Source: Epithemia pelagica (taxonomy: Eukaryota > Protista > Bacillariophyta). Taken from it: a DNA stretch of 64,000 nt. The stretch covers positions 1,798,001 to 1,862,000 of the forward strand of contig OX337237.1 of the NCBI GenBank assembly GCA_946965045.2, read 5' to 3'. Below the pieces are notes generated by a model that did no database searches, was not told where the DNA came from, and was given only the letters and a program-made list of their open reading frames with translations. This document shows positions 6,968-64,000 of this stretch, in pieces. Within the stretch, counting starts at the first letter, position 1. Each line of letters begins with the position of its first letter. A program made the translations under genes and the position numbers.

Positions 6968-9900
6968 CTCCCCACAGCTCGTTGGTTCAGCCTTGTCATC
7001 GCTGGATTCGTAGAGATCTTGAACTTCTCCTCTCCAAAACAATAGGGGCTTGAGTAGAGGCCAAATAGTTGCAAACTCCCAATGCTTGCTGAGGATGTCG
7101 GCAGGGTTGGTCTTCCCATCCTTCCAATAGAATGCAACGTATTGCGCTGCTATCGCTTCTCGTACCCGGTGATATGAAAGGAGATGATGTCTCTTGGACA
7201 AGATAGAATGAGGCATTGTTGCGTTAACAACCACAGATCGATTGTCTCCAAACAGATAACTGCGATCCCTGATTGGTACTCCAAGGTAACAAAGTGAATG
7301 CCGTAATTCAGTGATTTGATCGACTGCTGTCCTTGCTGCCACAAATTCTGATCCATATGTTGCCGTTTCCACAGTGCTCTGTCGTTTGCTGTACCAATCA
7401 ATTGGTGTCCCATTCAAGAGATGCAGGATGGCTGTTACAGACTTTCCTGTGATCATGTCGTGCATAAGGTTAGCATCAACATAGTGCGTTGTCGTCACAT
7501 ATCGTCCAAGTGGTTCTGGGCAATCATGAGGGATGTATTCCTTGGCATCTGAATAGACCGTGCGACTCCAATCAAAGTCTTGACTAGGAATGCTTGAGAA
7601 ATCGGGCTCTCCAATTCGGAATCTGATTGCACCATCAGAAAGATTGAAAAGGTATCCATAGATGCGTTTAGCTCTGTTGAGATGTCCCTGTCTTGGAGCT
7701 GCGCGGAACCTGAAAAGGGTCATCGTAGCAGTAAAAACATCAAAGCGACCAATTGTAATCACCCACTGAAGCTGTCCAATCAAGGTCTGGAAGTGCTGTG
7801 TACCTTCTTCATCAAGGAGTTTGGTGTCGTCCAATTCCGGGTGATCACCAGCAATGAGAGGGGTTTTAGCCTTCTTGGGTTTCTCTTTGAAGATACGTTC
7901 GAAGGTGTCCATCATTTTGCTAATGTATCGGCGTGGATCAGAGACTAGGGTTCCGTCAGGGTCCTTGGTGTACCGGCATCCCAGGTGATAGTCAATAGGT
8001 CCATCTCCCTTAAGCTTGAAGTTGTACTTTTCCTTGAAGACTTTGCAAATGTTTCCAGGGTCAGTAGCTATGATGGCTAAGTCATCCACATATACGGCGA
8101 TGTATTCGTAGCAATCCTCCCCAGGTGCTTTCCTCATCCAAATGTCAGGATCTGCCTTGCTTGGTGAGAAACCCATATCGGTGAGGACGTCAAAAAGGAC
8201 ATCATGCCATCGTGCGCCTGAAGATTTGAGACCATAGAGGGCCTTGTAGATGATGAGGATGTGACCTTCTAGCTCCTTGAACTCGGGTCCTGCCACAATA
8301 TATAACTTCTCCCCAGTCAATGCTTCAAGATACGCATTCCCAATGTCTGCTCCCCATACTTCTAGATCGTTCAGAGATCCAAGGAATAAAGCAATTTGTA
8401 GGTTGCAAATAGAAACAACTCCAGAGTAGATTGTTTCCACAGGTTCCTTCGTCAAGTGTCCATCTGCAACAAGTCGTGCCTTGTGCCTACCATCATGTTT
8501 CACATCAAAAACAAGATGCACTCGAATCTTTTGATATCCCTCAGGTGCATTTGATACCTTGCCATTTGTGAAGATGGCCTTCCCATGGTCCTTGAATGTC
8601 TCATATGATTGTATCTGAGACAGTTCCAATTCAGTTGCGTCTTGCCACCTTGTGGTACCATTTTGTTTGTCAAGATTGACAGCCTTGGCGTAATCTCGAG
8701 GGACTTGGAATCCAAACTTATACTTGACTGAGCGACGTACTTGTTTGATCCTTGATTGTTTTGCAGCACGTATCAGGCGTTTACTCGTCTTGACGTAGCG
8801 TTTTAGGTGTTTCCATCCTGGTTCGTTGAGGAGCCCATGCTTCTTTCCATATATGGCAACGGTGATTGGGTCGTCGTTGGCAATAAGGGAGAGTGGTTCA
8901 TAGGTTGTCTCCCCAGTTTCCCAATCCACAAGCAAGTTATACTTACTCCCCTTATAATCCGGGTCGGTTGAAGACAATGGGCCTTGATGTGCAATAACAT
9001 CCCTGAAACGGAACAAATTATCTCCCGAGGTCTGCGCTTGATTGTCCCTCTCAATATACTCCATCAACTGGTTATAAGAGATCATTTCATCAACGTCAGA
9101 ATTTGTCTTGCGGTAGATGTACTTGATGCGTTCTTCTTGCTTGAGTGATTCTTCATTAAGATCTACAACTCGTTTGACAACGCGTGCTCGATGACGCTCC
9201 CCATTTTCTTCAGTGTCGCATAGGAAAGTGCGTCCTATCATGTCTTCGTAATCGATTGTAGGCATTGGTTTGGATGGATCTTCACTTTTACTGCAAATGA
9301 AGACAGTGTCAGCCTGCTTATCAGTGTCATCTTTCGGAGACGTCTCCCCTGAAGGTCGATCCACACGAAGGTTGGGTGTAGTGGAAGCGACACAGCGAAC
9401 AGCGGAACGGTAGAGGATATGGTTGTCAGCAGACAAAATCTTCCATGTAAAAGCATCACCAACGTTGTGAGCAAAACCAACCCAATAGCCAAGTTTCTCA
9501 TCGGTCGAAGAAGGGTAGGGACCAGACGACGGTTCGGAGGGGTCAACACGATAGTAGACTTCATCCCAGAAGGGAAAGAACAGGAGGTGCGAAATGTCGG
9601 GAGGGTGACCGGTGAGAGCCTCAATAGGAGTACGTCCAGAGTGTGCATGTGAAGAAGAATGATTCAATAAGTCACAGACATATTCAAGGCAAAGTAACCA
9701 AACATTGGCCGGGCATCCAGTTGCATTCATGATAGCGTTCGTCATTCGTTTAACGGTCTGATAACGATTCTCGGCTTTGTTCTGATGCTGGTGGTATGGT
9801 TCAGAGCAATACTCCCCGATGAGCAAGGTGCGAAGGATATCCTTAACCTTATGGGAAATGAGAGATGAACCCCCGTCACTAATGAGTGTCTCCATAACAC

Positions 9901-10522
9901 CTCGCATGCGTATATTGTCTTGAAGAGTGTTCACAAATTGCTTGGTAGACTTGATACCGTAAATATCAGTGACAAGAGTATCGCGGCCAACAAAAATTTG
10001 AGCCACCTTTCCACCATGATCAACAGCAGGTGTATCAGAAAAGATCGAATCGGTAGCAACGGGTTCATGACGACGTGGTAGATTCAGGATAGGGTTGCGT
10101 GCCTTGAAATGTTTCTTGAGAGTGTCACAGTCAAAAATCACATTAGCATGTCGTGTAGTATGCTTGAAAGAAGGGACGAAATTGTTTCCAATCATGTTCT
10201 TCCACAAAACGACGATGGACAGATGCATGTTGAAGGGTTGGGTCTTCACCATTAGCATCAGCATAGATAGAGAAATATGTGGTGTTGTCGGGTCCGTGGT
10301 CATAAGGAAGGTCAAGGAGGAGATTGAGATTGCAGACAACACGATCAGTGTACTCCCCATACGTGTCATATGGATAACGTGCCATACTGCCATCGGTCGC
10401 AACCTGATGCCATGTAGTAGAAGCATCATGCTGTGGATCTGAATGAGTATGGTCAAGAACAGAGGGGTCCCAAGTAGATGGCAAAGTAAAGATGATTTGC
10501 GGCAATCGGTCCATGTCATCAT
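6965..10522 (-). CDS. pol: Pol of element 1: integrase, chromo-like domain, reverse transcriptase, RNase H (homology starts ~10170)
   Basis: VATDSIF, ISDGG, NKAENRY (DDE); ARLVADG, ADIGNAY, KALYGLK, YVDD (RT); HYVDANL, SEFVA, FGDN, NPADILSK (RNase H). Confidence 0.95.
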   Translation of the reverse strand: MMTWTDCRKSSLLCHLLGTPLFLTILIQIHSMMLLLHGIRLRPMAVWHVIHMTRMGSTLIVLSAISISSLTFLMTTDPTTPHISLSMLMLMVKTQPFNMHLSIVVLWKNMIGNNFVPSFKHTTRHANVIFDCDTLKKHFKARNPILNLPRRHEPVATDSIFSDTPAVDHGGKVAQIFVGRDTLVTDIYGIKSTKQFVNTLQDNIRMRGVMETLISDGGSSLISHKVKDILRTLLIGEYCSEPYHQHQNKAENRYQTVKRMTNAIMNATGCPANVWLLCLEYVCDLLNHSSSHAHSGRTPIEALTGHPPDISHLLFFPFWDEVYYRVDPSEPSSGPYPSSTDEKLGYWVGFAHNVGDAFTWKILSADNHILYRSAVRCVASTTPNLRVDRPSGETSPKDDTDKQADTVFICSKSEDPSKPMPTIDYEDMIGRTFLCDTEENGERHRARVVKRVVDLNEESLKQEERIKYIYRKTNSDVDEMISYNQLMEYIERDNQAQTSGDNLFRFRDVIAHQGPLSSTDPDYKGSKYNLLVDWETGETTYEPLSLIANDDPITVAIYGKKHGLLNEPGWKHLKRYVKTSKRLIRAAKQSRIKQVRRSVKYKFGFQVPRDYAKAVNLDKQNGTTRWQDATELELSQIQSYETFKDHGKAIFTNGKVSNAPEGYQKIRVHLVFDVKHDGRHKARLVADGHLTKEPVETIYSGVVSICNLQIALFLGSLNDLEVWGADIGNAYLEALTGEKLYIVAGPEFKELEGHILIIYKALYGLKSSGARWHDVLFDVLTDMGFSPSKADPDIWMRKAPGEDCYEYIAVYVDDLAIIATDPGNICKVFKEKYNFKLKGDGPIDYHLGCRYTKDPDGTLVSDPRRYISKMMDTFERIFKEKPKKAKTPLIAGDHPELDDTKLLDEEGTQHFQTLIGQLQWVITIGRFDVFTATMTLFRFRAAPRQGHLNRAKRIYGYLFNLSDGAIRFRIGEPDFSSIPSQDFDWSRTVYSDAKEYIPHDCPEPLGRYVTTTHYVDANLMHDMITGKSVTAILHLLNGTPIDWYSKRQSTVETATYGSEFVAARTAVDQITELRHSLCYLGVPIRDRSYLFGDNRSVVVNATMPHSILSKRHHLLSYHRVREAIAAQYVAFYWKDGKTNPADILSKHWEFATIWPLLKPLLFWRGEVQDLYESSDDKAEPTSCGE

Positions 10523-16028: not shown

Positions 16029-18271
16029 TTGCCTTTTCCCCAAGATGACGACAATGCTGAAAACCAAGGCATCCCATCGACCATTGAAAGGGCCCAACGT
16101 CGGGCTCAACTCCGAACTGCAGCTGGAGAAGATGGGTCACCTGCTCTGTCCAATCTCACAGACAACCAGCCAAGTCAAGGCATTACAGGCAACACACCTC
16201 CAACCAATCCTGACTCTCGTCCCATACGCCTTTTCGGGAGTGGCAGTACTGTCACTGATGGAGAATCTGGTACCGCGACAGAGAACGCGTCAATGCCTAG
16301 TCGGCGACTTCGACGACGACCCAATGACACAGAGGACTAAAGCAACTTTGAATCCGACGAAGATGGAGCGGACCCAGATGACGATTTGGAACAAGACGAA
16401 CAAGTTCCACGCCCAGATAATCCATTGGAGGACCAGAACGATTCGGACAATGAGGATGAAGAGGAAACCAACGAAGCACCCCCTCCCGTGCCCCCTCCAC
16501 AACAAAACACAAATGCTGCACAACAAAACACGAATGAGAACAACCAACCAGAACAAACTATTTGTCAACTCATGGATGCGTTGGTATTTTCATATCAAGA
16601 GACAGAACTTTCGGCTGAACCTACCAAATGGATTGGAAAAGACGCGAATCACTGTTCCATATACAGCGGACCAGATGGTCTCAGGGATGGTGTTAGTGAC
16701 AACTTTACCAATCAATACCAATGTTTCCAGTTTGTTAATGGCCTGTCGAACTCGCTGATAGCAGATATGGCAACCGCTACGAACGTTTATTTCCACGAGA
16801 AGATAAAACTAAACCTGGTGTCTCGTCGTGGATACTACCACTCACAAAAATGGCAGAATGTCACTCTCGAAGAGATGACGAGATTTCTTGGGACCATCCT
16901 GATGATGTCCCTTCGTCCCGTCGACGGAGGAGGATACGGTGCATATTTTCAAACTACAAATCGCATGTATAATGTCGGGGCCGGCCAACGGGCTATTGAA
17001 ATCAAAGATAGCACAGGATGGACCAGTCAATATATGAAGTTAGCGCGTTTCTGGCAGATTCGGGGGGCTTTCCACTTCGAGGAGAGTCCAAGCAGGCGTG
17101 GTGGCGACAAATGCCATCAGTTACGGAAGTTGATAACAGCCCTCAACGCAGCTTCAAAACGTAGCTTCCGGATTCCCAAAGACACGGCGTTCAACGAAGG
17201 TGGCATTGGATGCAGGTCACGGTACTGTCCAGTGAGACAGCATAACAAAGATAACCCCACAACCCGGTGAATGGGCTCATCTTCGGGCAGTGGGTGGATT
17301 CGAAAACGGTGAACTTCGTAAGTTCCTACGAAGATTGCGGAAGTGGGACCGTCCTCCGGCAAGTGGGCAGTCAGAAGGTGGAGTTCGTTTGCCCTGTACC
17401 ACTTATACGGTACCAAATGAATATGGGTGGCGTCGATAATGGTGACAAGATGAGGTTTCAGTTTGGAGGATTTGCAACCCATTCCCACTTCAAGAAATGG
17501 TATATGAAATCTGGCTTCGCTGTGATTGATTATATGCTGCTCAACAGTTATATTGTGGAACCTTGCAGCAGGCAATCGTCCTCGTTCCCGTAAAACGAAG
17601 TTGTTGCGGCATGCATTTTACACAATCATTGCCCAAACAATGTGCAGCTACGTCGTTCCTCAGGAAGTAGACGCTTTGGCTCGTCGGACAAGAAACAACA
17701 ACGAATCAACATGTAACGATGGGCACTTCCCAGTGGCGGTAGAAAGCAACAAACAAGTTGGATGTGCTGTGTGCATGCTGGAATATAGATGGAAGAAGCA
17801 AGAACTTAAGATGGGGGGGGGGGGGGGGGTGGTGTGTGATTCAAGAACGTTGGGAGATGCGTCAAGTGTGGGATTGCGGCCCACACGGTGGCTTGCCAAC
17901 ACAAACGAGAACAAGGCTGGAAAATCCACAACCGGCCTGAGTTTCAGAACAAGACGTGCTTCGAAATCTTACACTCATCAACAGGAAAAGAGATTTTTGT
18001 GGAGGCAGACGAGGGGTCTCGGTACACATACACGGTGAGAAAGAACCATCCCGTTGTGGCGGAACTACGGGAAGCACAAGGCTTGACATCAACGTTGACT
18101 CAGAAAAGAACACGCCAAGGAGCCGGAGAAACACAACCACGTAGACGAAGACGACAAAATGAGAATGAAGAGTCGTATCAAATACTGACAACGAGAACAA
18201 CGAAGATGACGACGAAGATGTTGAAGAGTTGGAGGAAGTGTAGTAAAAAACAGATCAACATATCAAATTGA
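16029..18271 (+). pseudogene. piggyBac/PGBD transposase, disrupted
   Basis: VTLEEMTRFLG, MKLARFWQIRGAFHF, AFNEG (first catalytic D reads N), QWVDSK, MGGVDNGD, LLNSY, C-terminal Cys motifs. In-frame stop at 16338, an apparent internal deletion at ~17268, and later frameshifts. Confidence 0.85.
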
Positions 18272-18326
18272 CGTTCTAAGCAATATTCAGTTACTACTAC
18301 GAGGATGTATTGACTCCCTGTGATGC

Positions 18327-18968
18327 CTAATGGTCAGTAGGAGCAGGAATGAAACCAGTATAAGGGTCGTCTGTGTTTTCGTTAGGGAAATTTTCACGGA
18401 CAAAGTCAACTAGGCAAGGAGGCAGTTCACCACGGTTGCCCTCCCCCAGTGTGCCATGGAGCTTGTTGGAAAGGCGGCGGTACAAATGGTAGCATATGGA
18501 ACGGTTAGGCTTACCAAGCCCCTTGAGGTGCGTCGCAATATCGTGCATGTAAGGGAGGTGCTCAACAACTTGGCACGGGTTGAGTTTGCAAACGGGGCAA
18601 ACATTCTCCCAAAACATGTATCCATGTTTATTGCTAGAAGACTGTTGAGTATTGTTCAATTCATGAAGGATGCGGTCAATGCTTTCCATCGTCGCGTATT
18701 CTTCAGGAATAAAGCGGGTTTCAGTACGTTCTTCGGCTTGGTGAACTACGTTGCCGTCCTGATTTGTTGTCATGACAAGATACTTCTGCAGGGTAAAGGG
18801 CACAAACACTCCACTTGATGAACAGTTGTTGTCGGGGAGGTGGGCTTCTGCAATGTCGACAGATTCACTGAACGCTAAAAGACAAAACAAAAATGAGGTG
18901 AGGAGCATTTGCGCATCGAGAATGGGTTCGATAACAACTTTTGGTAGAATCGTTCCGTACAAACTCAC
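18327..18968 (-). CDS. Passenger ORF with P2X7-ballast/KolX-like C-terminal motif
   Basis: CPVCKLNPC...YHLYRR...HGTLGEGNRGELPPCLVDFVRENFP...YTGF matches the YR...G...LPxC...R..FP....YxGF pattern. Lies inside the TIRs, convergent with the transposase. Confidence 0.6.
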   Translation of the reverse strand: MSLYGTILPKVVIEPILDAQMLLTSFLFCLLAFSESVDIAEAHLPDNNCSSSGVFVPFTLQKYLVMTTNQDGNVVHQAEERTETRFIPEEYATMESIDRILHELNNTQQSSSNKHGYMFWENVCPVCKLNPCQVVEHLPYMHDIATHLKGLGKPNRSICYHLYRRLSNKLHGTLGEGNRGELPPCLVDFVRENFPNENTDDPYTGFIPAPTDH

Positions 18969-19253
18969 CTTCCATCATACCCGGGTCATCCATGTTTGCG
19001 TTGTGGTTTGGTTCGACAATTCAATGATCCCAATGACAAAGTGCAATGAGATCAGTCAATGCATTGGATACCACAGCGCGATAAAAGCAACAAAAATGAT
19101 GCTGGCGGAGAGTTAAAACGATCTGTTTTCAAACACGGTTAAGGCGCGAGCAGTATAAGCGAGCATAACCACTAATCCCATAAATTTTATGCGAGTAGTA
19201 GATTAGTTGCTCGCTAGTGCTTAAGACGCGTTCCTTACGAATGGCGTTAAAAA

Positions 19254-22123
19254 ATGTCTTACCTCGGTTTAAAACCAATGCCTCGAAGGCACCGAATCAC
19301 GGATTGGCAGCAAGACAAAAGCCAAAAAAACCTCCAAGTTGGATTCCATCAGCCGATCGAGGTGGTCGCTCGCGCCGTTGTCGACAAAACACAAGACGAC
19401 AACAAGACATTGACCACTTTCTGGCCATCTCAGACCTGTAGACAACGTAATTAAATAAAGATGGTTAGTAGGTCATCCTCTGGTGCTGTGCAATCGTTTG
19501 CAGCAGCACAAAGTGCTGCAAGAGCAGCAATGGGCCCTCAGTCGCAACGACTGGGCAACTTGTACAGTCGACTCCCCGTTCGACGCGGACAACGACGCTC
19601 TGGTTACCAAACACTTACCAGGGTTGTGGAGTTTCAACAAGAGATTGATTGTTGTGTGTGTTGAGCCAAACACAACAACCTCCCCATACCACACAGAGCC
19701 CACCACATGCTCTGCCCACTCAACAAGAAAACAAAAGGAAAGCCACACAAGACAAACGAACTGGGAGAGATCAAGAGACTGGTGGACAAAGCAGCCAAGG
19801 AGAGGGAAAGAAACAACAAACAACCATTGTCTGAAGCTGAAAAGCACAGACCAGGAATCACCATGGAGGACTGGGAGGACTTCATGAAGCCGCGTCCGAA
19901 TACGGCCAAAAAGTATTGAACCCAGTAAAGTCGTTGACAGGTGAGGAGTTGGCAGAAGAGAGAATGGGCGAAATCACCAACGGTCATAGTGTGACAGAGA
20001 CGAGGATGTCGGCCGAACATTTCAAAAATGAAATATTACATAGGGTTTCACACGGTACATTCAACGGTATCACGTGTCCCAAGACGATGCATGCGCTTGC
20101 TGCATTTATACAAGACACGTGCCTCGGGGCCAAGCGTGATACGGGTATCTTATCGAATTTTTTCGATGGTATGGAATTTTGTGTACCGACATGCGCGAAC
20201 AACACTTGTGCCTTGTACGACTCGTTTTCTCGGCAGAAACTCTTGGTTGTGGATTGGGAACTCTTCTTTCCTGGAGAAGAACTCTCTTGTCCTAGTTGTA
20301 ACGGCAAACTTCAGCGTACATGGACAAACTTTTCTGAAAAAAAGTGTGTTTTCCCCCTTTTCGGAATAAATGGTCCCCCACGCTATGCCATCGTCATGCA
20401 CCACCGACGCTCGGCATGCAAAACATGCTTCCAAGGGAATGAGGGGCGAATTGGCAAAACTTCCACCCTGGATCGCCATGGCGTACCCTGTCGAGCCCAA
20501 ATATGCAAAGGGAATGGCACACGTGATAAAAGAAGCAACACATCTATTTGATGAGCTAATGGTTACCCATGGCAATGGCGATCTGTGCTCAAAGCAAATA
20601 TACAGTGGTATAAACAAAGATTACGAGGACAGACAAATGAGGTACTATTCCTTTTGCGTCTCAACTGGGCAAAAAAGTGAGGACTATCCTAAAAAGGATG
20701 GTGAATGGCTGGTCACCTTTCCTCCACAAGGTGACACCATCCGACAACTCTATGATGCTGCTTGCAACTGTGACTGGAACTGGTGGGGTTTGTCAGACCA
20801 CGACAGACAAACAAGGGAAATACAAATGGTAAAGTGTGAGGGTACCTTTGCATACGACCATACTTTCCAGGCGGTCAGGAACTACCCCTCAGCCTGCAAG
20901 GCCAAGGCAGTCTGGGATGTTACCACAGAGAAAGGACAGATTGCATGTGCCATCCTTGTCAAAACAACAAGAATCAAGGAGGCTAGCCATGCAGCTGAAC
21001 AGCTAGCACGTCGCGAATCCTTCAAGCCCAAGGCCCTCTACTCCGACACATGGCCATGCTTGGAAGGATACTGGGCATTGATACTTGGGGAAGAAACTGC
21101 AAGTAAAGGTCGGCTTGGTCTATTCCACTTTATGCAACGAATCACCAAGACCATGCGACCACGACACATCGACTTTCCGAGGGCCCTGCGTGAATTGAAA
21201 ATGAAATTATATGAGTACAATGATGAAGACATGAACAATGTCATTGAGGCATTGAAGGCGGGGACATTGTCCAACAGCAAAAAGCAATACACAGAGAGTG
21301 AGATTAGTGACTTGCTCAATTCACCAGAGTTTGGACGGGATACGAAAAATACGTACGGAAAACAATTCGGTCAAAGGAATGCATCATTGTCAAACTTGAA
21401 GAATTCAAGATAAACTTCAAGGTGACAGCGTCCCCTGACAAACCGGCCGCAAGAGGAAGATGCGACCCACGGACAAACCAGCCTCTCTTTACAGAGGACA
21501 CTCATCAGGCTATAGGAAATTGCAAGGACAAAGCGCAGTATTTGTCAGATCCATTTCCTGTAGAAGAAATGTACGTGACAATCCCACCGAACAAAAATGC
21601 AAGACATGACTTACCTGAGTACTTGGGAGTGCGAGGCGAGTCAAAGCTAGAAAGTTTTCATGACAATCTGGCGCATTTTGGAAATTGTGGGATGCGTGAG
21701 AGTTTGGCCGACAACCTGAATCTATGCGGTACCACACGTTACAATCTTACCATTCGTTACAAGTTTCATTTACTCGGAATGAGCGCTGATGAGCGTACAG
21801 CCATGCCATCTGGATGGGAAGCTGTGGTTCCAGTGTGGAACCACACTAAACTGAAGTTCATCAACACGATGGCTTTTAGGTCTGGGTCAAAAGAACAGTT
21901 CGAATGGGTGGAGGACTTACCAGAAGATAACGGTGAGCGCTTCTTCTCTGAATACTTGGTGCAACAAGAGAAGCGTGAGAAAGAAATACCAGAGGACAAG
22001 CCAGAGGACAAAGTGCTGCGAAGTTCCAAAGTCGTGAAGGAGGACTCAGAAATAGCTCCTGGGGAGGTAGCGCCATGGTGGATGTGCCGGGCCGTTGGGA
22101 AGTCTCAGCGGCCGGAGCGGTAG
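19254..22123 (+). pseudogene. Dada/DUF6729-like DDE transposase, frameshifted
   Basis: CPSC zinc motif, YDHTF (~20855), YSDTWP (~21040), RLGLFHFMQRI (~21115), RGESKLESFH (~21632). Stop at 19917, frameshifts at ~20446 and ~21331. Confidence 0.55.
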
Positions 22124-22272
22124 TGGTGGTAGCCGCTGGGGAAGCGTCCGAAGGCCTCGAAAGATTACGTTACAAGGTCTGGGAGGCTCCAGGGTCGGTA
22201 GTAGCCGTCGCAGGCTGGAAAAACTGGATTGCAATGAAGCAGCACCAGCAGGAGGGTCCAAATGACTGGGGT

Positions 22273-22470
22273 GGAGGCAGTAATAGTGCGGGAGGAGCGA
22301 CGATTGGCCACGGTGAAGGTAGCCGCAGAAGGTAGGGGGTGGAGGCAGTAGCAGTGCGGGAGGAGCAAAGATTGGCCACGGTGAAGGTAGCCGCAGAAGG
22401 TAGGGGGTGGAGGCAGTAGCAGTGCGGGAGGAGCGACGATTGGCCACGGTGAAGGTAGCCGCAGAAGGTA
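22273..22470. repeat. 68-bp tandem repeat x3
   Basis: Units start at 22273, 22341 and 22409. One unit is 69 bp in the duplicate near 63205. Confidence 0.95.
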
Positions 22471-22618
22471 CATAGAAAAAGGTACTAAAGGACTATAGAG
22501 CTATAGAGTAGGCTGCAAAGATGCGCAGTCGTTGAGAAGCCCGATCACATGATCAACACCGCAATAAAATAAACGCTCACTCCGTGACTTTTTGCAAATT
22601 GTTACACTCGAAAGCTGA

Positions 22619-23703
22619 TCACTGGAAAGGCCTCACAAAGAACTCTTGCGACCCGAGTCCACAAGCTCCCGTTTCAATGTATTTCTTCTTCTTGACATGC
22701 TTCAAATTCTTGCGGATGAACTGCGAAATGTCTAGCATCTGGTGATTAGTTGTTTGTTGATTGCCATTGCGAAGGTATTGCAGATAGTGCTGTAGTATAT
22801 CTACATCCGCTCCGCGGAGTGGGGAGGCACGAGAAGGGGCTATTGACTCCGAGAAGGGCAATAGCTCCGAGAAGTGGACCGCCTTCTAAATCCGCGTCAG
22901 CGGATTTGGCGGTCCACGACGAGGAGCTATTGCCCGCCGAGGAGTCAAAAGCCCCGACAAGTGCCCCCACGACCAGGAGGGGATGTCGCTTGCTTCTATA
23001 ACCTCCGAGTCCCCCCCAATTAACTGTCACACTTTTTTCCCAGGACTGTTTTTTTTGCTCTGCACTAGCTTTTTTGCACCGCACTTGCTCGCGTATGAGA
23101 GCGCGGCCGTCGTGGGCAATATAAGGCTATATTAGCCGAAAATCCTACTTCCATTCCGAGGAGCTATAGTAGCAGAACACTGGCATGCAGACAACAGATT
23201 CCAGATTTCTGTTTACGAATAACAAGATAGTTGTTGATTGCTTCTTCTTCAAAGAAAAGCCACGAGAACTCAATCAATGGAATGTTTACAGCTCCTTTGT
23301 CCTCCTCACTTTTCATATCTCTAATTTTTTCGACGAAGCCGTCAAATTTGTTTTGAAATGTGGTGGTGTAACGACCAGTGTTGTGATTGCGCGATGGCCT
23401 CCAACTGAAGTCCTCGGACATGAGGCGTTTGGCACAAAGCCGTTGTGCATCATTTAGGTCCTCCCAATTCAAACCAAGCCCTGTTACGAATTGTTCTGCC
23501 AGTCTTGTGCACTCTTCAAAGGACATGGTTGGTTGATTTGAAGGTACCATAGGTGTCTCACTTTGAGGCGTATCAGTGGAGCTTGTGGTGGAAGAGAGGG
23601 TGAGCTGGGGCGTGGGGCGAATGCGCACAGTGGCCGGAGATTCAAATGTCGTAATCATAGAGGCGGGTTTGTGGTCTTCTTGTGTTGACATGCTGTCCAA
23701 CAC
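22619..23703 (-). pseudogene. Papain-like cysteine-peptidase-type ORF split by a 374-bp insertion
   Basis: Removing 22796-23169 plus one TAG joins RKQKSGICCLHASVLL to QHYLQYLRNG in frame. Q...C is the papain-like oxyanion/nucleophile spacing. The His/Asn half is not seen. Confidence 0.45.
22796..23169 (+). mobile_element. Small non-coding structured insertion element (hairpin element A)
   Basis: TAG on both sides (22793-95, 23170-72). 184-nt foldback at 22803-22986 with four 5x5 internal loops. Interrupts an ORF cleanly. Confidence 0.8.
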
Positions 23704-56372: not shown

Positions 56373-56825
56373 CTATGTCGTGTCCTTCCGAGTTGCGTTG
56401 ATCTTGTGGAATTTGTTGAAAAACATCTCCATCTTCGTCTGGATTGTTGTTTTGTTTTCATCCACCTTCCTTGGAGGGTATCGAGCTGCGTGATACAGTC
56501 CATAGTAAAGCATGATGGTTCCATCCTTGATCTCATCCACTGCTGTCACGCGATCGTTGTGAGAGTCTTCTTTGTCATCGTCCTGCTCTGTTGCATCCAC
56601 TCGGCCCGTCTTCAAAATACGTTCGCATTTCGCAATCATCTCCATCCTCTTAGCCTCGTCCTTCTCTGCATACACATCCAAAGGCTCTTCTTCGTCACTG
56701 TCATCACTATCCGACATGTTCATCCGTAGGATCTTGTCGAATGTCTTCACAGAGGAGTCGTCATCCATTTGGTTGTTGCTTTTTTTGACTGTCTCCACTA
56801 TTTCTTCTATCATTTCCTCCATCAT
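56373..56825 (-). CDS. Acidic ORF of unknown function
   Basis: 150-aa ORF, no recognised motif. Confidence 0.2.
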   Translation of the reverse strand: MMEEMIEEIVETVKKSNNQMDDDSSVKTFDKILRMNMSDSDDSDEEEPLDVYAEKDEAKRMEMIAKCERILKTGRVDATEQDDDKEDSHNDRVTAVDEIKDGTIMLYYGLYHAARYPPRKVDENKTTIQTKMEMFFNKFHKINATRKDTT

Positions 56826-58012
56826 CTCCTCTTGTAGGGCTTAATAGAACCCATGGAGATAATCTGTCGGTGCTCCTTCCTCATCGTCCCGGAGGATGGT
56901 TGCATTAACGCCGTCAAGTAGCTGCCGGGGGTCCGCCATGGTCGACTCCGCTTTTTTCTTAGTCTTTCGGCTCCAACCATATGTCCACCCTCCAACCCTG
57001 ATTCTTACATGCTGGCTGACTCTTGTCGACTCGGTGAGTCTGCCGGGCGAGCTCCTGTATCCCTATGTATTCCATTCGTTTGACTTAAAATCCTAACTGG
57101 AATGGTTACTAAAGACCTAATACGTATTAGGTTACTTATCGAAAATATCCGTCCGTACGTTCTCACTCTATCTTTCCTACGTCGTGACTGTATCCCTATG
57201 TATTCCATTTGTTTGACTTAAAATTCTAACTGGAATGGTTATTAATGACCTAAATGATGAACCCATCATCTTCGACATTTTTAATATGGTCTTCCATGTC
57301 ACATACACAAAGATTTAAGAATTTCAATTCTTTCACAATTTCGAGAAGCATGCCTTGTGTCTCATCCCTGACGGTATTATCCCGTGTACGTGTACGATAA
57401 TGGTGTGAAGAGTGGGAGGGAATCTCGGAGGGAATTTCATTTGGAGTAGGCGACTCGTGTGACAGTGAATCATTATTTTGGTGATCTTCCTCGGTGTCTT
57501 CTGTAGATTCGTTTTCTTCAATTTTGTTGACATTCCTTTTAGCTTGGTTGATAATGTACTCGTTACAGAACACCTGGTAGAATGGATTTGTCTGTACACT
57601 GGTTCGCGCTGCTCTGATTTCTGTCCATCTGCAAATTGGAGTGTCACACGCTTCCTGGATCCAATGGACTCTGGAACACGAGTGACCCACCCCAGGTAGT
57701 TCTTGCGACTGGAGGACCTAGAGTTCACCACCGCGATATCACCAATATTCCACATATACACGATCCCCGCCACAGGATTCACTGACCGATTCATAACAGA
57801 TCGAGGAACAACGCTAAATTTTGTTATCGATTTGGTCCTATATGGCGATAATGCAACCTGTATGGCGATCATATCTGGCGATATCGCTAGTTATAATTAA
57901 CATGTTGTCGTCTATTTATGCGAGGGACTACTATTGTCCAGACCAAACTACTACTACAACTACTACTAACTCCATACCAGACTGTGTAGGTAGTTCGTCT
58001 CACATTTCTATA

Positions 58013-58363
58013 CTACAGTAGGAATTTTTTGTACAACCGGGAAGTAGTTTCGTGCGAGTCGCGCGGTTTCCCCCTCGTGTGTGACACTTGTGCGACACTT
58101 GTGTGACACTTTGTGACATGGCTTGCAGGAATTTCTCACTACCTACACAGCTTGATAGGGAGTAAGTTTACTACTTCCCTGTGTCTGGCCGTCCTCTCGC
58201 GTCGGGCGCGCCCGGCTTGTCGGGAGAATGACTCGACGGGCAATTGTCTTGTCGGGCGTGCGCCCTCCTCGACCATTGCCCTCCTCGTCATTCTACCCTC
58301 CGCGCCGGGCGGTCCCTCCTTGAAAGGACTCGACACCGGGAAGTATTAATACTACTACTACTA
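58013..58363 (-). mobile_element. Small non-coding structured element (hairpin element B) including flanking TAG units
   Basis: 174-nt foldback at 58172-58345 with three clear 5x5 internal loops. TAG at both ends; (TAG)4 on the 5' side. Confidence 0.7.
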
Positions 58364-58367
58364 CCGC

Positions 58368-61300
58368 CGATAATGGTGACAAGATGAGGTTTCAGTTTGG
58401 AGGATTTGCAACCCATTCCCACTTCAAGAAATGGTATATGAAATCTGGCTTCGCTGTGATTGATTGTATGCTGCTCAACAGTTATATTGTGGAACCTTGC
58501 AGCAGGCAATCGTCCTCGTTCCCGTAAAACGAAGTTGTCGCGGCATGCATTTTACACAATCATTGCCCAAACAATGTGCAGCTACGTCGTTCCTCAGGAA
58601 GTAGACGCTTTGGCTCGTCGGACAAGAAACAACAACGAATCAACATGTAACGATGGGCACTTCCCAGTGGCGGTAGAAAGCAACAAACAAGTTGGATGTG
58701 CTGTGTGCATGCTGGAATATAGATGGAAGAAGCAAGAACTTAAGATGGGGGGGGGGGGGGGTGGTGTGTGATTCAAGAACGTTGGGAGATGCGTCAAGTG
58801 TGGGATTGCGGCCCACACGGTGGCTTGCCAACACAAACGAGAACAAGGCTGGAAAATCCACAACCGGCCTGAGTTTCAGAACAAGACGTGCTTCGAAATC
58901 TTACACTCATCAACAGGAAAAGAGATTTTTGTGGAGGCAGACGAGGGGTCTCGGTACACATACACGGTGAGAAAGAACCATCCCGTTGTGGCGGAACTAC
59001 GGGAAGCACAAGGCTTGACATCAACGTTGACTCAGAAAAGAACACGCCAAGGAGCCGGAGAAACACAACCACGTAGACGAAGACGACAAAATGAGAATGA
59101 AGAGTCGTATCAAATACTGACAACGAGAACAACGAAGATGACGACGAAGATGTTGAAGAGTTGGAGGAAGTGTAGTAAAAAACAGATCAACATATCAAAT
59201 TGACGTTCTAAGCAATATTCAGTTACTACTACGAGGATGTATTGACTCCCTGTGATGCCTAATGGTCAGTAGGAGCAGGAATGAAACCAGTATAAGGGTC
59301 GTCTGTGTTTTCGTTAGGGAAATTTTCACGGACAAAGTCCACTAGGCAAGGAGGCAGTTCACCACGGTTGCCCTCCCCCAGTGTGCCATGGAGCTTGTTG
59401 GAAAGGCGGCGGTACAAATGGTAGCATATGGAACGGTTAGGCTTACCAAGCCCCTTGAGGTGCGTCGCAATATCGTGCATGTAAGGGAGGTGCTCAACAA
59501 CTTGGCACGGGTTGAGTTTGCAAACGGGGCAAACATTCTCCCAAAACATGTATCCATGTTTATTGCTAGAAGACTGTTGAGTATTGTTCAATTCATGAAG
59601 GATGCGGTCAATGCTTTCCATCGTCGCGTATTCTTCAGGAATAAAGCGGGTTTCAGTACGTTCTTCGGCTTGGTGAACTACGTTGCCGTCCTGATTTGTT
59701 GTCATGACAAGATACTTCTGCAGGGTAAAGGGCACAAACACTCCCCTTGATGAACAGTTGTTGTCGGGGAGGTGGGCTTCTGCAATGTCGACAGATTCAC
59801 TGAACGCTAAAAGACAAAACAAAAATGAGGTGAGGAGCATTTGCGCATCGAGAATGGGTTCGATAACAACTTTTGGTAGAATCGTTCCGTACAAACTCAC
59901 CTTCCATCATACCCGGGTCATCCATGTTTGCGTTGTGGTTTGGTTCGACAATTCAATGATCCCAATGACAAAGTGCAATGAGATCAGTCAATGCATTGGA
60001 TACCACAGCGCGATGAAAGCAACAAAAATGATGCTGGCGGAGAGTTAAAACGATCTGTTTTCAAACACGGTTAAGGCGCGAGCAGTATAAGCGAGCATAA
60101 CCACTAATCCCATAAATTTTATGCGAGTAGTAGATTAGTTGCTCGCTAGTGCTTAAGACGCGTTCCTTACGAATGGCGTTAAAAAATGTCTTACCTCGGT
60201 TTAAAACCAATGCCTCGAAGGCACCGAATCACGGATTGGCAGCAAGACAAAAGCCAAAAAAACCTCCAAGTTGGATTCCATCAGCCGATCGAGGTGGTCG
60301 CTCGCGCCGTTGTCGACAAAACACAAGACAACAACAAGACATTGACCACTTTCTGGCCATCTCAGACCTGTAGACAACGTAATTAAATAAAGATGGTTAG
60401 TAGGTCATCCTCTGGTGCTGTGCAATCGTTTGCAGCAGCACAAAGTGCTGCAAGAGCAGCAATGGGCCCTCAGTCGCAACGACTGGGCAACTTGTACAGT
60501 CGACTCCCCGTTCGACGCGGACAACGACGCTCTGGTTACCAAACACTTACCAGGGTTGTGGAGTTTCAACAAGAGATTGATTGTTGTGTGTGTTGAGCCA
60601 AACACAACAACCTCCCCATACCACACAGAGCCCACCACATGCTCTGCCCACTCAACAAGAAAACAAAAGGAAAGCCACACAAGACAAACAAACTGGGAGA
60701 GATCAAGAGACTGGTGGACAAAGCAGCCAAGGAGAGGGAAAGAAACAACAAACAACCATTGTCTGAAGCTAAAAAGCACAGACCAGGAATCACCATGGAG
60801 GACTGGGAGGACTTCATGAAGCCGCGTCCGAATACAGCCAAAAAGTATTGAACCCAGTAAAGTCGTTGACAGGTGAGGAGTTGGCAGAAGAGAGAATGGG
60901 CGAAATCACCAACGGTCATAGTGTGACAGAGACGAGGATGTCGGCCGAACATTTCAAAAATGAAATATTACATAGGGTTTCACACGGTACATTCAACGGT
61001 ATCACGTGTCCCAAGACGATGCATGCGCTTGCTGCATTTATACAAGACACGTGCCTCGGGGCCAAGCGTGATACGGGTATCTTATCGAATTTTTTCGATG
61101 GTATGGAATTTTGTGTACCGACATGCGCGAACAACACTTGTGCCTTGTACGACTCGTTTTCTCGGCAGAAACTCTTGGTTGTGGATTGGGAACTCTTCTT
61201 TCCTGGAGAAGAACTCTCTTGTCCTAGTTGTAACGGCAAACTTCAGCGTACATGGACAAACTTTTCTGAAAAAAAGTGTGTTTTCCCCCTTTTCGGAATA

Positions 61301-64000
61301 AATGGTCCCCCACGCTATGCCATTGTCATGCACCACCGATGCTCGGCATGCAAAACATGCTTCCAAGGGAATGAGGGGCGAATTGGCAAAACTTCCACCC
61401 TGGATCGCCATGGCGTACCCTGTCGAGCCCAAATATGCAAAGGGAATGGCACACGTGATAAAAGAAGCAACACATCTATTTGATGAGCTAATGGTTACCC
61501 ATGGCAATGGCGATCTGTGCTCAAAGCAAATATACAGTGGTATAAACAAAGATTACGAGGACAGACAAATGAGGTACTATTCCTTTTGCGTCTCAACTGG
61601 GCAAAAAAGTGAGGACTATCCTAAAAAGGATGGTGAATGGCTGGTCACCTTTCCTCCACAAGGTGACACCATCCGACAACTCTATGATGCTGCTTGCAAC
61701 TGTGACTGGAACTGGTGGGGTTTGTCAGACCACGACAGACAAACAAGGGAAATACAAATGGTAAAGTGTGAGGGTACCTTTGCATACGACCATACTTTCC
61801 AGGCGGTCAGGAACTACCCCTCAGCCTGCAAGGCCAAGGCAGTCTGGGATATTACCACAGAGAAAGGACAGATTGCATGTGCCATCCTTGTCAAAACAAC
61901 AAGAATCAAGGAGGCTAGCCATGCAGCTGAACAGCTAGCACGTCGCGAATCCTTCAAGCCCAAGGCCCTCTACTCCGACACATGGCCATGCTTGGAAGGA
62001 TACTGGGCATTGATACTTGGGGAAGAAACTGCAAGTAAAGGTCGGCTTGGTCTATTCCACTTTATGCAACGAATCACCAAGACCATGCGACCACGACACA
62101 TCGACTTTCCGAGGGCCCTGCGTGAATTGAAAATGAAATTATATGAGTACAATGATGAAGACATGAACAATGTCATTGAGGCATTGAAGGCGGGGACATT
62201 GTCCAACAGCAAAAAGCAATACACAGAGAGTGAGATTAGTGACTTGCTCAATTCACCAGAGTTTGGACGGGATACGAAAAATACGTACGGAAAACAATTC
62301 GGTCAAAGGGATGCATCATTGTCAAACTTGAAGAATTCAAGATAAACTTCAAGGTGACAGCGTCCCCTGACAAACCGGCCGCAAGAGGAAGACGCGACCC
62401 ACGGACAAACCAGCCTCTCTTTACAAAGGACACTCATCAGGCTATAGGAAATTGCAAGGACAAAGCGCAGTATTTGTCAGATCCATTTCCTGTAGAAGAA
62501 ATGTACGTGACAATCCCACCGAACAAATATGCAAGACATGGCTTACCTGAGTACTTGGGAGTGCGAGGCGAGTCAAAGCTAGAAAGTTTTCATGACAATC
62601 TGGCGCATTTTGGAAATTGTGGGATGCGTGAGAGTTTGGCCGACAACCTGAATCTTTGCGGTACCACACGTTACAATCTTACCATTCGTTACAAGTTTCA
62701 TTTACTCGGAATGAGCGCTGATGAGCGTACAGCCATGCCATCTGGATGGGAAGCTGTGGTTCCAGTGTGGAACCACACTAAACTGAAGTTCATCAACACG
62801 ATGGCTTTTAGGTCTGGGTCAAAAGAACAGTTCGAATGGGTGGATGACTTACCAGAAGATAACGGTGAGCGCTTCTTCTCTGAATACTTGGTGCAACAAG
62901 AGAAGCGTGAGAAAGAAATACCAGAGGACAAGCCAGAGGACAAAGTGCTGCGAAGTTCCAAAGTCGTGAAGGAGGACTCAGAAATAGCTCCTGGGGAGGT
63001 AGCGCCATGGTGGATGTGCCGGGCCGTTGGGAAGTCTCAGCGGCCGGAGCGGTCGTGGTGGTAGCCGCTGGGGAAGCGTCCGACGGCCTCGAAAGATTAC
63101 GTTACAAGGTGTGGGAGGCTCCAGGGTCGGTAGTAGCCGTCGCAGGCTGGAAAAACTGGATTGCAATGAAGCAGCACCAGCAGGAGGGTCCAAATGACTG
63201 GGGTGGAGGCAGTAACAGTGCGGGAGGAGCAACGATTGGCCACGGTGAAGGTAGCCGCAGAAGGTAGGGGGGTGGAGGCAGTAGCAGTGTGGGAGGAGCG
63301 AAGATTGGCCACGGTGAAGGTAGCCGCAGAAGGTAGGGGGTGGAGGCAGTAGCAGTGCGGGAGGAGCGACGATTGGCCACGGTGAAGGTAGCCGCAGAAG
63401 GTACATAGAAAAAGGTACTAAAGGACTATAGAGCTATAGAGTAGGCTGCAAAGATGCGCAGTCGTTGAGAAGCCCGATCACATGATCAACACCGCAATAA
63501 AATAAACGCTCACTCCGTGACTTTTTGCAAATTGTTACACTCGAAAGCTGATCACTGGAAAGGCCTCACAAAGAACTCTTGCGACCCGAGTCCACAAGCT
63601 CCCGTTTCAATGTATTTCTTCTTCTTGACATGCTTCAAATTCTTGCGGATGAACTGCGAAATGTCTAGCATCTGGTGATTAGTTGTTTGTTGATTGCCAT
63701 TGCGAAGGTATTGCAGATAGTGCTGTAGTATATCTACATCCGCTCCGCGGAGTGGGGAGGCACGAGAAGGGGCTATTGACTCCGAGAAGGGCAATAGCTC
63801 CGAGAAGTGGACCGCCTTCTAAATCCGCGTCAGCGGATTTGGCGGTCCACGACGAGGAGCTATTGCCCGCCGAGGAGTCAAAAGCCCCGACAAGTGCCCC
63901 CACGACCAGGAGGGGATGTCGCTTGCTTCTATAACCTCCGAGTCCCCCCCCCCCCCCAATTAACTGTCACACTTTTTTCCCAGGACTGTTTTTTTTGCTC
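58368..64000 (+). repeat. Segmental duplication of 17434-~23060 (about 99% identical by eye)
   Basis: Same ORF set repeated at an offset of ~40.93 kb: piggyBac 3' part, passenger ORF 59259-59900, right TIR 60167-60178+TTAA, Dada-like ORFs 60186-63064, 68/69-bp repeat, hairpin A copy from 63729. Confidence 0.97.

Follow-up and report, generated by a model that had tools for sequence, protein, structure and literature searches.

The 64,000-nt window analysed here, from the diatom Epithemia pelagica (contig OX337237.1, positions 1,798,001 to 1,862,000), contains two long hairpin elements, A and B. A first-pass annotation, made from the letters alone, placed B at 58013-58363 and took the two for a structure-defined family of small mobile elements. 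The locus raises the question of whether B is indeed a mobile element, where it begins and ends, and what might move it.

Boundaries, copies and insertion sites

The boundaries of A and B were set from aligned copies at separate loci. Contigs of two runs of the same organism (X1 and X2; run type not on record) were mapped on 56500-60000, and loose contig ends, whose flanks are diverse and non-consensus, start at 57964. These loose ends and three further copies show that the earlier far boundary at 58013 was wrong: B is 389 bp long and spans 57966-58354. In the aligned copies the edges read CTA-ACTCC...ATA-CTA for B and CTAC-TATAGC...ATA-CTAC for A. The parts of B, its flanks and the copies of A in the window are as follows.

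57946-57965, plus strand: left flank, an (ACT/TAC)n microsatellite that is the target DNA here (tandem repeat finder)
57966-57968, plus strand: left copy of the constant direct repeat CTA (aligned copies)
57969-57994, plus strand: left terminus, pairs with 58138-58167 (inverted repeat I2, 30 nt, 83%)
57995-58137, plus strand: non-coding tail, 143 bp (second rod-base 11-mer and 11-bp unit repeats)
58138-58185, plus strand: internal complementary region (joined-end alignment; compensatory change 58174/58343)
58186-58331, minus strand: rod core with apex at 58258-58261 (stems interrupted by four GAGRA-GGG / CCC-GNCRA repeats)
58332-58354, plus strand: right terminus including the right CTA at 58352-58354 (inverted repeat I3)
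58355-58364, plus strand: right flank (TAC)3, followed by the breakpoint 58364/58365 of a 5.6-kb duplication
22792-23172, minus strand: element A, 381 bp, of B-like architecture (bounded by CTAC...CTAC)
63725-64000: second copy of A, cut by the window end

No coding capacity was found within B (the ORF listing gives short ORFs only, the longest of 78 aa). It has no poly(A), ARAGORN found no tRNA-like part in it, and no terminal inverted repeats emerged from a self-complement search, its outermost 30 nt at either end being unrelated to each other. Rfam has nothing like A or B: there was no match at the gathering score in the whole 64-kb window and none at E up to 1 in 57850-58450. The reported repeat of the 11-mer TACTTCCCGGT was recovered, with exactly two occurrences in B (58036-58046 and 58335-58345). 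The tail also holds 3.8 copies of an 11-bp unit, TGTGTGACACT, at 58078-58118; the number of these repeats varies among B copies, and the tail sequence is more variable than the rod.

The repeat status of B is observed directly. Summed word depth across 57904-58371 was ~75,000-123,000 in X1 and 17,000-56,000 in X2 compared to a few hundred in the flanks, so that depth over B is about 100-500 times that of the flanks; because summed depth is not a copy number, we read it only as indicating many, young copies. The contigs mapped from the two runs number 911 and 232, mostly at 99% identity or more, and two marine metagenomes carry near-identical rod pieces. Further copies were fetched from an assembly of the same species (ENA ERZ21939226) using spurious ORFs as handles. 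A search with the 78-aa ORF of B returned only P0001, which led to L001, and the 112-aa ORF of A returned five handles leading to six new A copies. The B-like copies lie in L001 (97%), L137 (94.7%) and L142 (98.4%), and the A-like copies (93-98%) in L139, L140, L141, L142 and twice in L143. All copies, four of B and seven of A, have unrelated flanks at different loci. Their ends are exact on both sides in every case except the B copy of L142, which is cut short at its 3' end after ...GTATTAA; the other three B copies end in ...ATACTA. Depth and aligned copies support the earlier view of A and B as small mobile elements: both are non-coding, occur in multiple copies and have sharp ends in common between copies, set in unrelated flanking sequence.

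Some scans for additional members were negative. Gapless palindrome scans found no further rods in L001-L005. A three-motif scan of metagenomes gave at least 120 loci, all of them tandem or low-complexity repeats, with no rod among the matches listed, and a scan of viral contigs with GGGCAAT...ATTGCCCTYCTCG returned unrelated phage sequences only. In both runs, some contigs carry a B variant with a single T in place of the 36 apical rod nucleotides (58258-58293). Others change over to different segments of rod at 58208, 58277 and 58311, a pattern suggestive of mosaic subfamilies.

The sequence bordering the insertions follows the element. At the 5' edge, CTA is present in three of the four B copies and GTA in L001; CTAC is present in six of the seven A copies and TTAC in the seventh. 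CTA(C) lies at both ends of 9 of the 11 insertions and TA(C) at those of the remaining two. The repeat is non-palindromic and always tied to the orientation of the element. The reported bounding by TAG therefore stands, as CTA(C) read in element orientation. However, the reported variation in TAG number does not belong to the element: it arises because the target of B at this one locus is a (TAC)n microsatellite, and what every copy shares is a single CTA(C) per end. Other copies lack the microsatellite, and removing B together with one CTA from the window restores an in-phase (TAC)n tract.

Element A interrupts an ORF. On the minus strand (22600-23703), a 179-aa ORF at 23164-23703 ends at a stop supplied by A, and removal of A with one repeat lets the ORF continue in frame for ~57 more codons. 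A protein search found no homologue of the interrupted ORF, and for this reason no empty site for A was obtained.

A piggyBac-containing segment of 5.6 kb is present twice in the window (17431-23060 and 58365-64000, 99.3% identical). The second copy is cut inside the transposase gene at 58364/58365, 10 bp outside B and beyond (TAC)3, and the far end of the duplication runs through A and out of the window. We found no shared sequence at the 58364/58365 junction, and we treat the duplication as a rearrangement separate from B. Within the piggyBac passenger gene, depth at 59191-59775 is 10-20 times that of its neighbours in X1 and flat in X2. This peak could represent expression, if X1 is RNA, or a repeated gene.

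Rod elements also adjoin transposons elsewhere. In L142:10824-13010 and L143:6504-7562 they lie next to piggyBac (DDE_Tnp_1_7), Harbinger-type (DDE_Tnp_4) and copia (RVT_2) sequences, and the rod family seems concentrated in transposon-rich stretches, as in the window. Three further rod-element copies were located within ~100 kb of loci fetched for other copies. The family is thus a frequent insertion in this genome. Because it inserts at (TAC)n-type sites and within other transposons, repeat annotation should include it.

The rod, the joined ends and the kinship of A and B

The rod of B occupies 58161-58356 on the minus strand and comprises about 95 pairs. Refolding reproduced the minus-strand stems first proposed (GCCCGGC/GCCGGGC, AGAATGAC/GTCATTCT, GGGCAAT/ATTGCCC and GGGC/GCCC), and the three loops were likewise as described (GCGGA/GACAA, GAGGA/GTCGA and GAGGA/GACAA). 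The rule given for the loops of A and B, G[AC]G[AG]A opposite G[ACT]C[ACG]A, fits six of the seven; the remaining one, AAGGA/GACGC, is degenerate. Each of these "5x5 loops" consists of two purine-purine 2x2 mismatches (GA/GA, GA/AA or AA/GA) around a G:C pair, with GGG always after the loop on one arm and CCC always before it on the other. Across the 64-kb window, CCCGNCRAG occurs seven times, always in rod A or rod B, against a chance expectation of 2.3, and six of the nine GAGRAGGG sites are in these rods too. Against shuffled sequences, the rod fold has a z of -4 to -5 as DNA and -7.6 as RNA. The predicted folding energy is -50.7 kcal/mol for the minus strand and -46.2 for the plus strand as DNA, and -114.8 and -99.3 as RNA; overall, the predicted advantage of the purine strand amounts to 4-7 kcal/mol as DNA and 7-15 as RNA. 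An alignment of the A and B rods with MAFFT and RNAalifold was out of register and was discarded.

Variation among the copies bears on which strand folds. In B, 4 of 91 pairs vary. Pair 58174/58343 is C:G, A:T or T.G in three copies, giving one compensatory pair; two further changes produce G.T on the plus strand, and one more produces G.T on the minus strand. In A, 9 of 69 rod pairs vary, always through a change on one side only; the purine strand tolerates six to seven of these changes and the other strand three. Of the paired rod positions of A, 10 of 138 are variable, a lower proportion than the 34 of 191 outside the rod. The natural covariation proposed earlier is thus weakly documented, by the single compensatory pair at 58174/58343 among near-identical copies. 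The strand signals conflict: the purine mismatches favour the minus strand and three of the four variable B pairs favour the plus strand, while A shows the opposite, by six or seven to three. Both strands could function, at different stages.

The ends of B are related to its interior rather than to each other. Positions 58138-58167 pair with the left terminus and the adjacent 58168-58185 with the right terminus. When the two ends are joined (right terminus, CTA, left terminus), they are colinear with the reverse complement of 58138-58185 in 40 of 49 columns. The joint-interior score is 63, compared to 15±2.6 (maximum 27) in 1000 shuffles, a z of about 18. Colinearity is weaker in A, at 33 compared to 14.8±2.5 (maximum 27) in shuffles, a z of about 7. 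Because the ends are colinear with the interior, a circularised copy would fold into one rod with the joint inside it. This continuous fold is computed: for circular B with one CTA, both strands are predicted to form a single ~240-nt rod that includes the joint. For A, too, the joint falls within the fold. Neither a circle nor a tandem joint appeared among the contigs of the two runs.

A and B are 49% identical over their full length (z about 3.7). They have in common the termini A(G)CTCC... and ...GTAnnnATAC, the tail motif GTGTGACA and the module CATTGCCCTYCTCG. Their stems, reported as largely unrelated, are not wholly so, as GGG/CCC follows each loop and GGGCAAT/ATTGCCC is present in both elements. 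Judged by their sequence, A and B are distant relatives, and the family is not defined by structure alone. The original proposal therefore holds in that these are small mobile elements with one architecture and one loop motif, but not in that they form a purely structure-defined family. A third, diverged rod hairpin was found at L141:~1490-1690. It has the same loop motif (GAGRA/GACGA), stems mostly unlike those of A and B, GGGCAATAGC in common with A, and flanks TTTAATAGC...GCTATTAAAG.

Candidate routes of mobility

These data are best explained by taking B as a full copy of a mobile element that is young, abundant and non-autonomous, with a 384-bp core and CTA at each end. The lack of genes, inverted termini, poly(A) and tRNA parts, together with the exact ends, the oriented repeat and the complementary interior, leads away from DDE miniature elements, SINEs, retrozymes and Helitrons, and points to recombination of a joined-end intermediate. 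Three mobilisers had been suggested for the family: an HUH enzyme, a tyrosine recombinase and a transposase with a 3-bp target-site duplication. The tyrosine recombinase fits best, and we consider it reasonably probable that B is a non-autonomous element moved by such an enzyme.

On this model, the two ends of the element would at some stage be joined or kept together, and segment 58138-58185 would serve as splint or template for the joint, the role that the internal complementary region has in DIRS1-like elements. The CTA(C) of the joint would then be swapped with a target CTA(C) by a tyrosine recombinase whose gene lies elsewhere in the genome. Such an exchange would leave an equal short repeat on both sides, oriented with the element, and no true target-site duplication. 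The G-A-zipped rod, which would continue across the joint, may be the shape-defined part of the recombination or replication substrate. We infer the circle itself, the enzyme, an RNA-cDNA or a DNA-only route, and the strand that folds. Counting against a recombinase, B lacks the mutually inverted termini of DIRS1. The loci read contain no recombinase gene linked to a rod, and the ~300 kb read contain no autonomous copy with B's ends. How eukaryotic tyrosine-recombinase elements recognise and join their own ends is poorly understood. A family that keeps only the cis-acting parts (two ends, splint and mismatch-zipped rod) would offer a compact natural substrate from which to learn what the enzyme requires.

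A 9.6-kb retroelement is present at three of the loci fetched (L001:10207-19819, L137:6844-16121 and L138:6916-16527) in copies that are ~98-99% identical. Its identity as a tyrosine-recombinase retroelement is taken only from look-alikes in the Atlas and from motifs: it has reverse-transcriptase motifs and look-alikes of RVT_1, RT_RNaseH and Dam, and one of its proteins has Phage_integrase look-alikes and an R...K...R...W...Y pattern. Sequence searches of its proteins against Pfam and PDB gave no hit, and the AlphaFold model was too poor for use (pLDDT 39). The element has split direct repeats (A1...B1A2...B2), ends CTC/AGTGTAC...CAAGTG/CCC and an internal junction with CCCTC. Its family is large in diatoms (Epithemia, Fragilaria) and metagenomes, with 362 clusters.

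The position of this retroelement raises the alternative that the rods are landing pads, that is, independent repeats that receive tyrosine-recombinase elements and are not themselves moved by a recombinase. In L001, the B copy (9848-10206 and 19820-19860) is split by the retroelement exactly at the loop-motif CCCTC, with CCCTC on both sides, and in L137 an intact B copy lies ~830 bp upstream of the retroelement. However, the near-identical copies of L137 and L138 and the relatives in L003-L005 are neither inserted in a rod nor flanked by a split one, so the rod is neither the retroelement's own end nor its regular target. With only one of six copies in a rod, ownership or regular targeting of the rod by the retroelement was rejected as a general rule, and we conclude that the L001 retroelement is an unrelated insertion into a B copy, with its own split direct repeats and CCCTC core. 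As a landing pad would also leave the amplification and the interior-joint complementarity of A and B unexplained, we regard this alternative as distinctly improbable.

The other alternatives keep B mobile and change the enzyme. B could descend, as a miniature form, from a cut-and-paste DDE transposon (Tc1/mariner- or PIF/Harbinger-like) that duplicates TA or 3 bp of its target site. It is small, high-copy and strongly folded, TA is present on both sides of all copies, and TA-specific DDE transposons also leave a constant TA-containing flank; moreover, piggyBac and Harbinger-type (DDE_Tnp_4) transposases are present in the genome. A miniature element of this kind would nevertheless have terminal inverted repeats and a duplicated TA, and B has the TA without the repeats. 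The repeat on its flanks is not a palindrome and keeps to the element's orientation, and cut-and-paste transposition has no use for an interior complementary to the joined ends, making a DDE origin quite unlikely. A retro-copied structured RNA (SINE-like, retrozyme-like or a hairpin small-RNA precursor), copied in trans by a reverse transcriptase of the genome with no recombinase step of its own, would agree with the strong RNA fold (z -7.6), with the G.U-type changes tolerated on the plus strand of the basal helix, and with the presence in the genome of near-identical recombinase retroelements carrying reverse transcriptase. Yet B has no poly(A) or tRNA-like part and matches no ribozyme or other Rfam family, the search for RNA runs that contain it found none, and the exact ends (other than the shortened 3' end in L142) with a constant short repeat do not suit this origin, which we judge unlikely. 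Movement as single-stranded DNA by a hairpin-recognising HUH-type enzyme, Helitron-like or IS200/IS605-like, would account for strand-specific mismatches, a large hairpin and the lack of terminal inverted repeats. Helitrons, however, have 5' TC, 3' CTRR, a short 3' hairpin and insertion between A and T, while the ends of B are ACTCC...ATAC or, on the other strand, GTAT...GGAGT. Since no locus read contains an HUH gene and a constant repeat on both sides would be unexpected, an HUH route seems very unlikely.

Comparison with known systems

The first-pass statement that no described element has this layout was too strong, as an internal complementary region combined with a short constant flanking repeat is the layout of DIRS1-like elements (PMC3266345, PMC7192593). 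These have an internal complementary region and a 3-bp joint and integrate without duplication (PMC3266345), and the region was shown in 2020 to be essential for DIRS-1 retrotransposition (PMC7192593). As in DIRS1-like elements, an internal segment near one end of B consists of neighbouring parts, one complementary to the element's start and the other to its end (scores of 63 for B and 33 for A), a very short sequence flanks the insertion on either side and would also occupy the joint, and a ~10-nt motif (GGGAAGTA-like) recurs in the termini and the complementary region. In contrast, DIRS1-like elements encode reverse transcriptase/RNase H and a tyrosine recombinase, and B, which has no gene, could at most be a non-autonomous derivative. 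DIRS1-like elements also have inverted terminal repeats, while a self-complement search shows that the termini of B are not mutually complementary. Finally, a self-complementary rod, with G-A mismatch loops recurring along it at intervals, makes up about half of B, and no such rod is described for DIRS.

Crypton DNA transposons likewise have short, constant terminal direct repeats that are recombination substrates, and no terminal inverted repeats (PMC3212892). Non-autonomous derivatives are known, and CryptonS occurs in diatoms and oomycetes, its hosts including a diatom (PMC3212892). The Cryptons described there carry a tyrosine recombinase gene only and have repeats of 4-6 bp (TATGG in CryptonS; PMC3212892). 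The repeat of B is 3-4 bp (CTA/CTAC) and B has no gene; a hairpin and an internal complementary region are undescribed for Cryptons, and the word "hairpin" is absent from PMC3212892. Stowaway- and Tourist-type MITEs resemble B in size, copy number, strong fold-back potential and TA-containing flanks. However, MITEs fold through their inverted-repeat termini, while the termini of B are unrelated and its folding is internal and from terminus to interior.

The layout of B, a DIRS-like splint combined with short constant repeats, is therefore not without precedent. What is new, relative to the literature that we searched, is the mismatch-zipped rod together with the gene-less, high-copy form. For the rod, the nearest mechanistic likeness is the integron attC site, as an analogy of mechanism only. 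Integron attC and CTX phage attP sites are folded single-strand hairpins recombined by tyrosine recombinases (PMC2727003, PMC7439510). They are imperfect palindromes of variable sequence and conserved shape, with strand-specific unpaired or mismatched bases and a crossover in the folded stem (PMC2727003, PMC7439510). Similarly, the joint of B lies inside the predicted fold, and its mismatches are conserved while most stems vary. The bacterial sites differ in being 60-140 nt long with extrahelical bases, where B has tandem G-A pairs. We tentatively raise the further possibility, which we hold to be less probable than not, of a diatom class of tyrosine-recombinase elements whose recombination site would be a folded single strand in place of a duplex sequence, namely a long rod of conserved tandem G-A pairs with the CTA crossover inside it, and of which A and B would be abundant gene-less derivatives. 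Such a system would be a eukaryotic counterpart of attC with DIRS-style templating of the joint, and the family may reveal whether folded single-strand recombination, known so far from bacterial integrons and CTX phage, also exists in eukaryotes.
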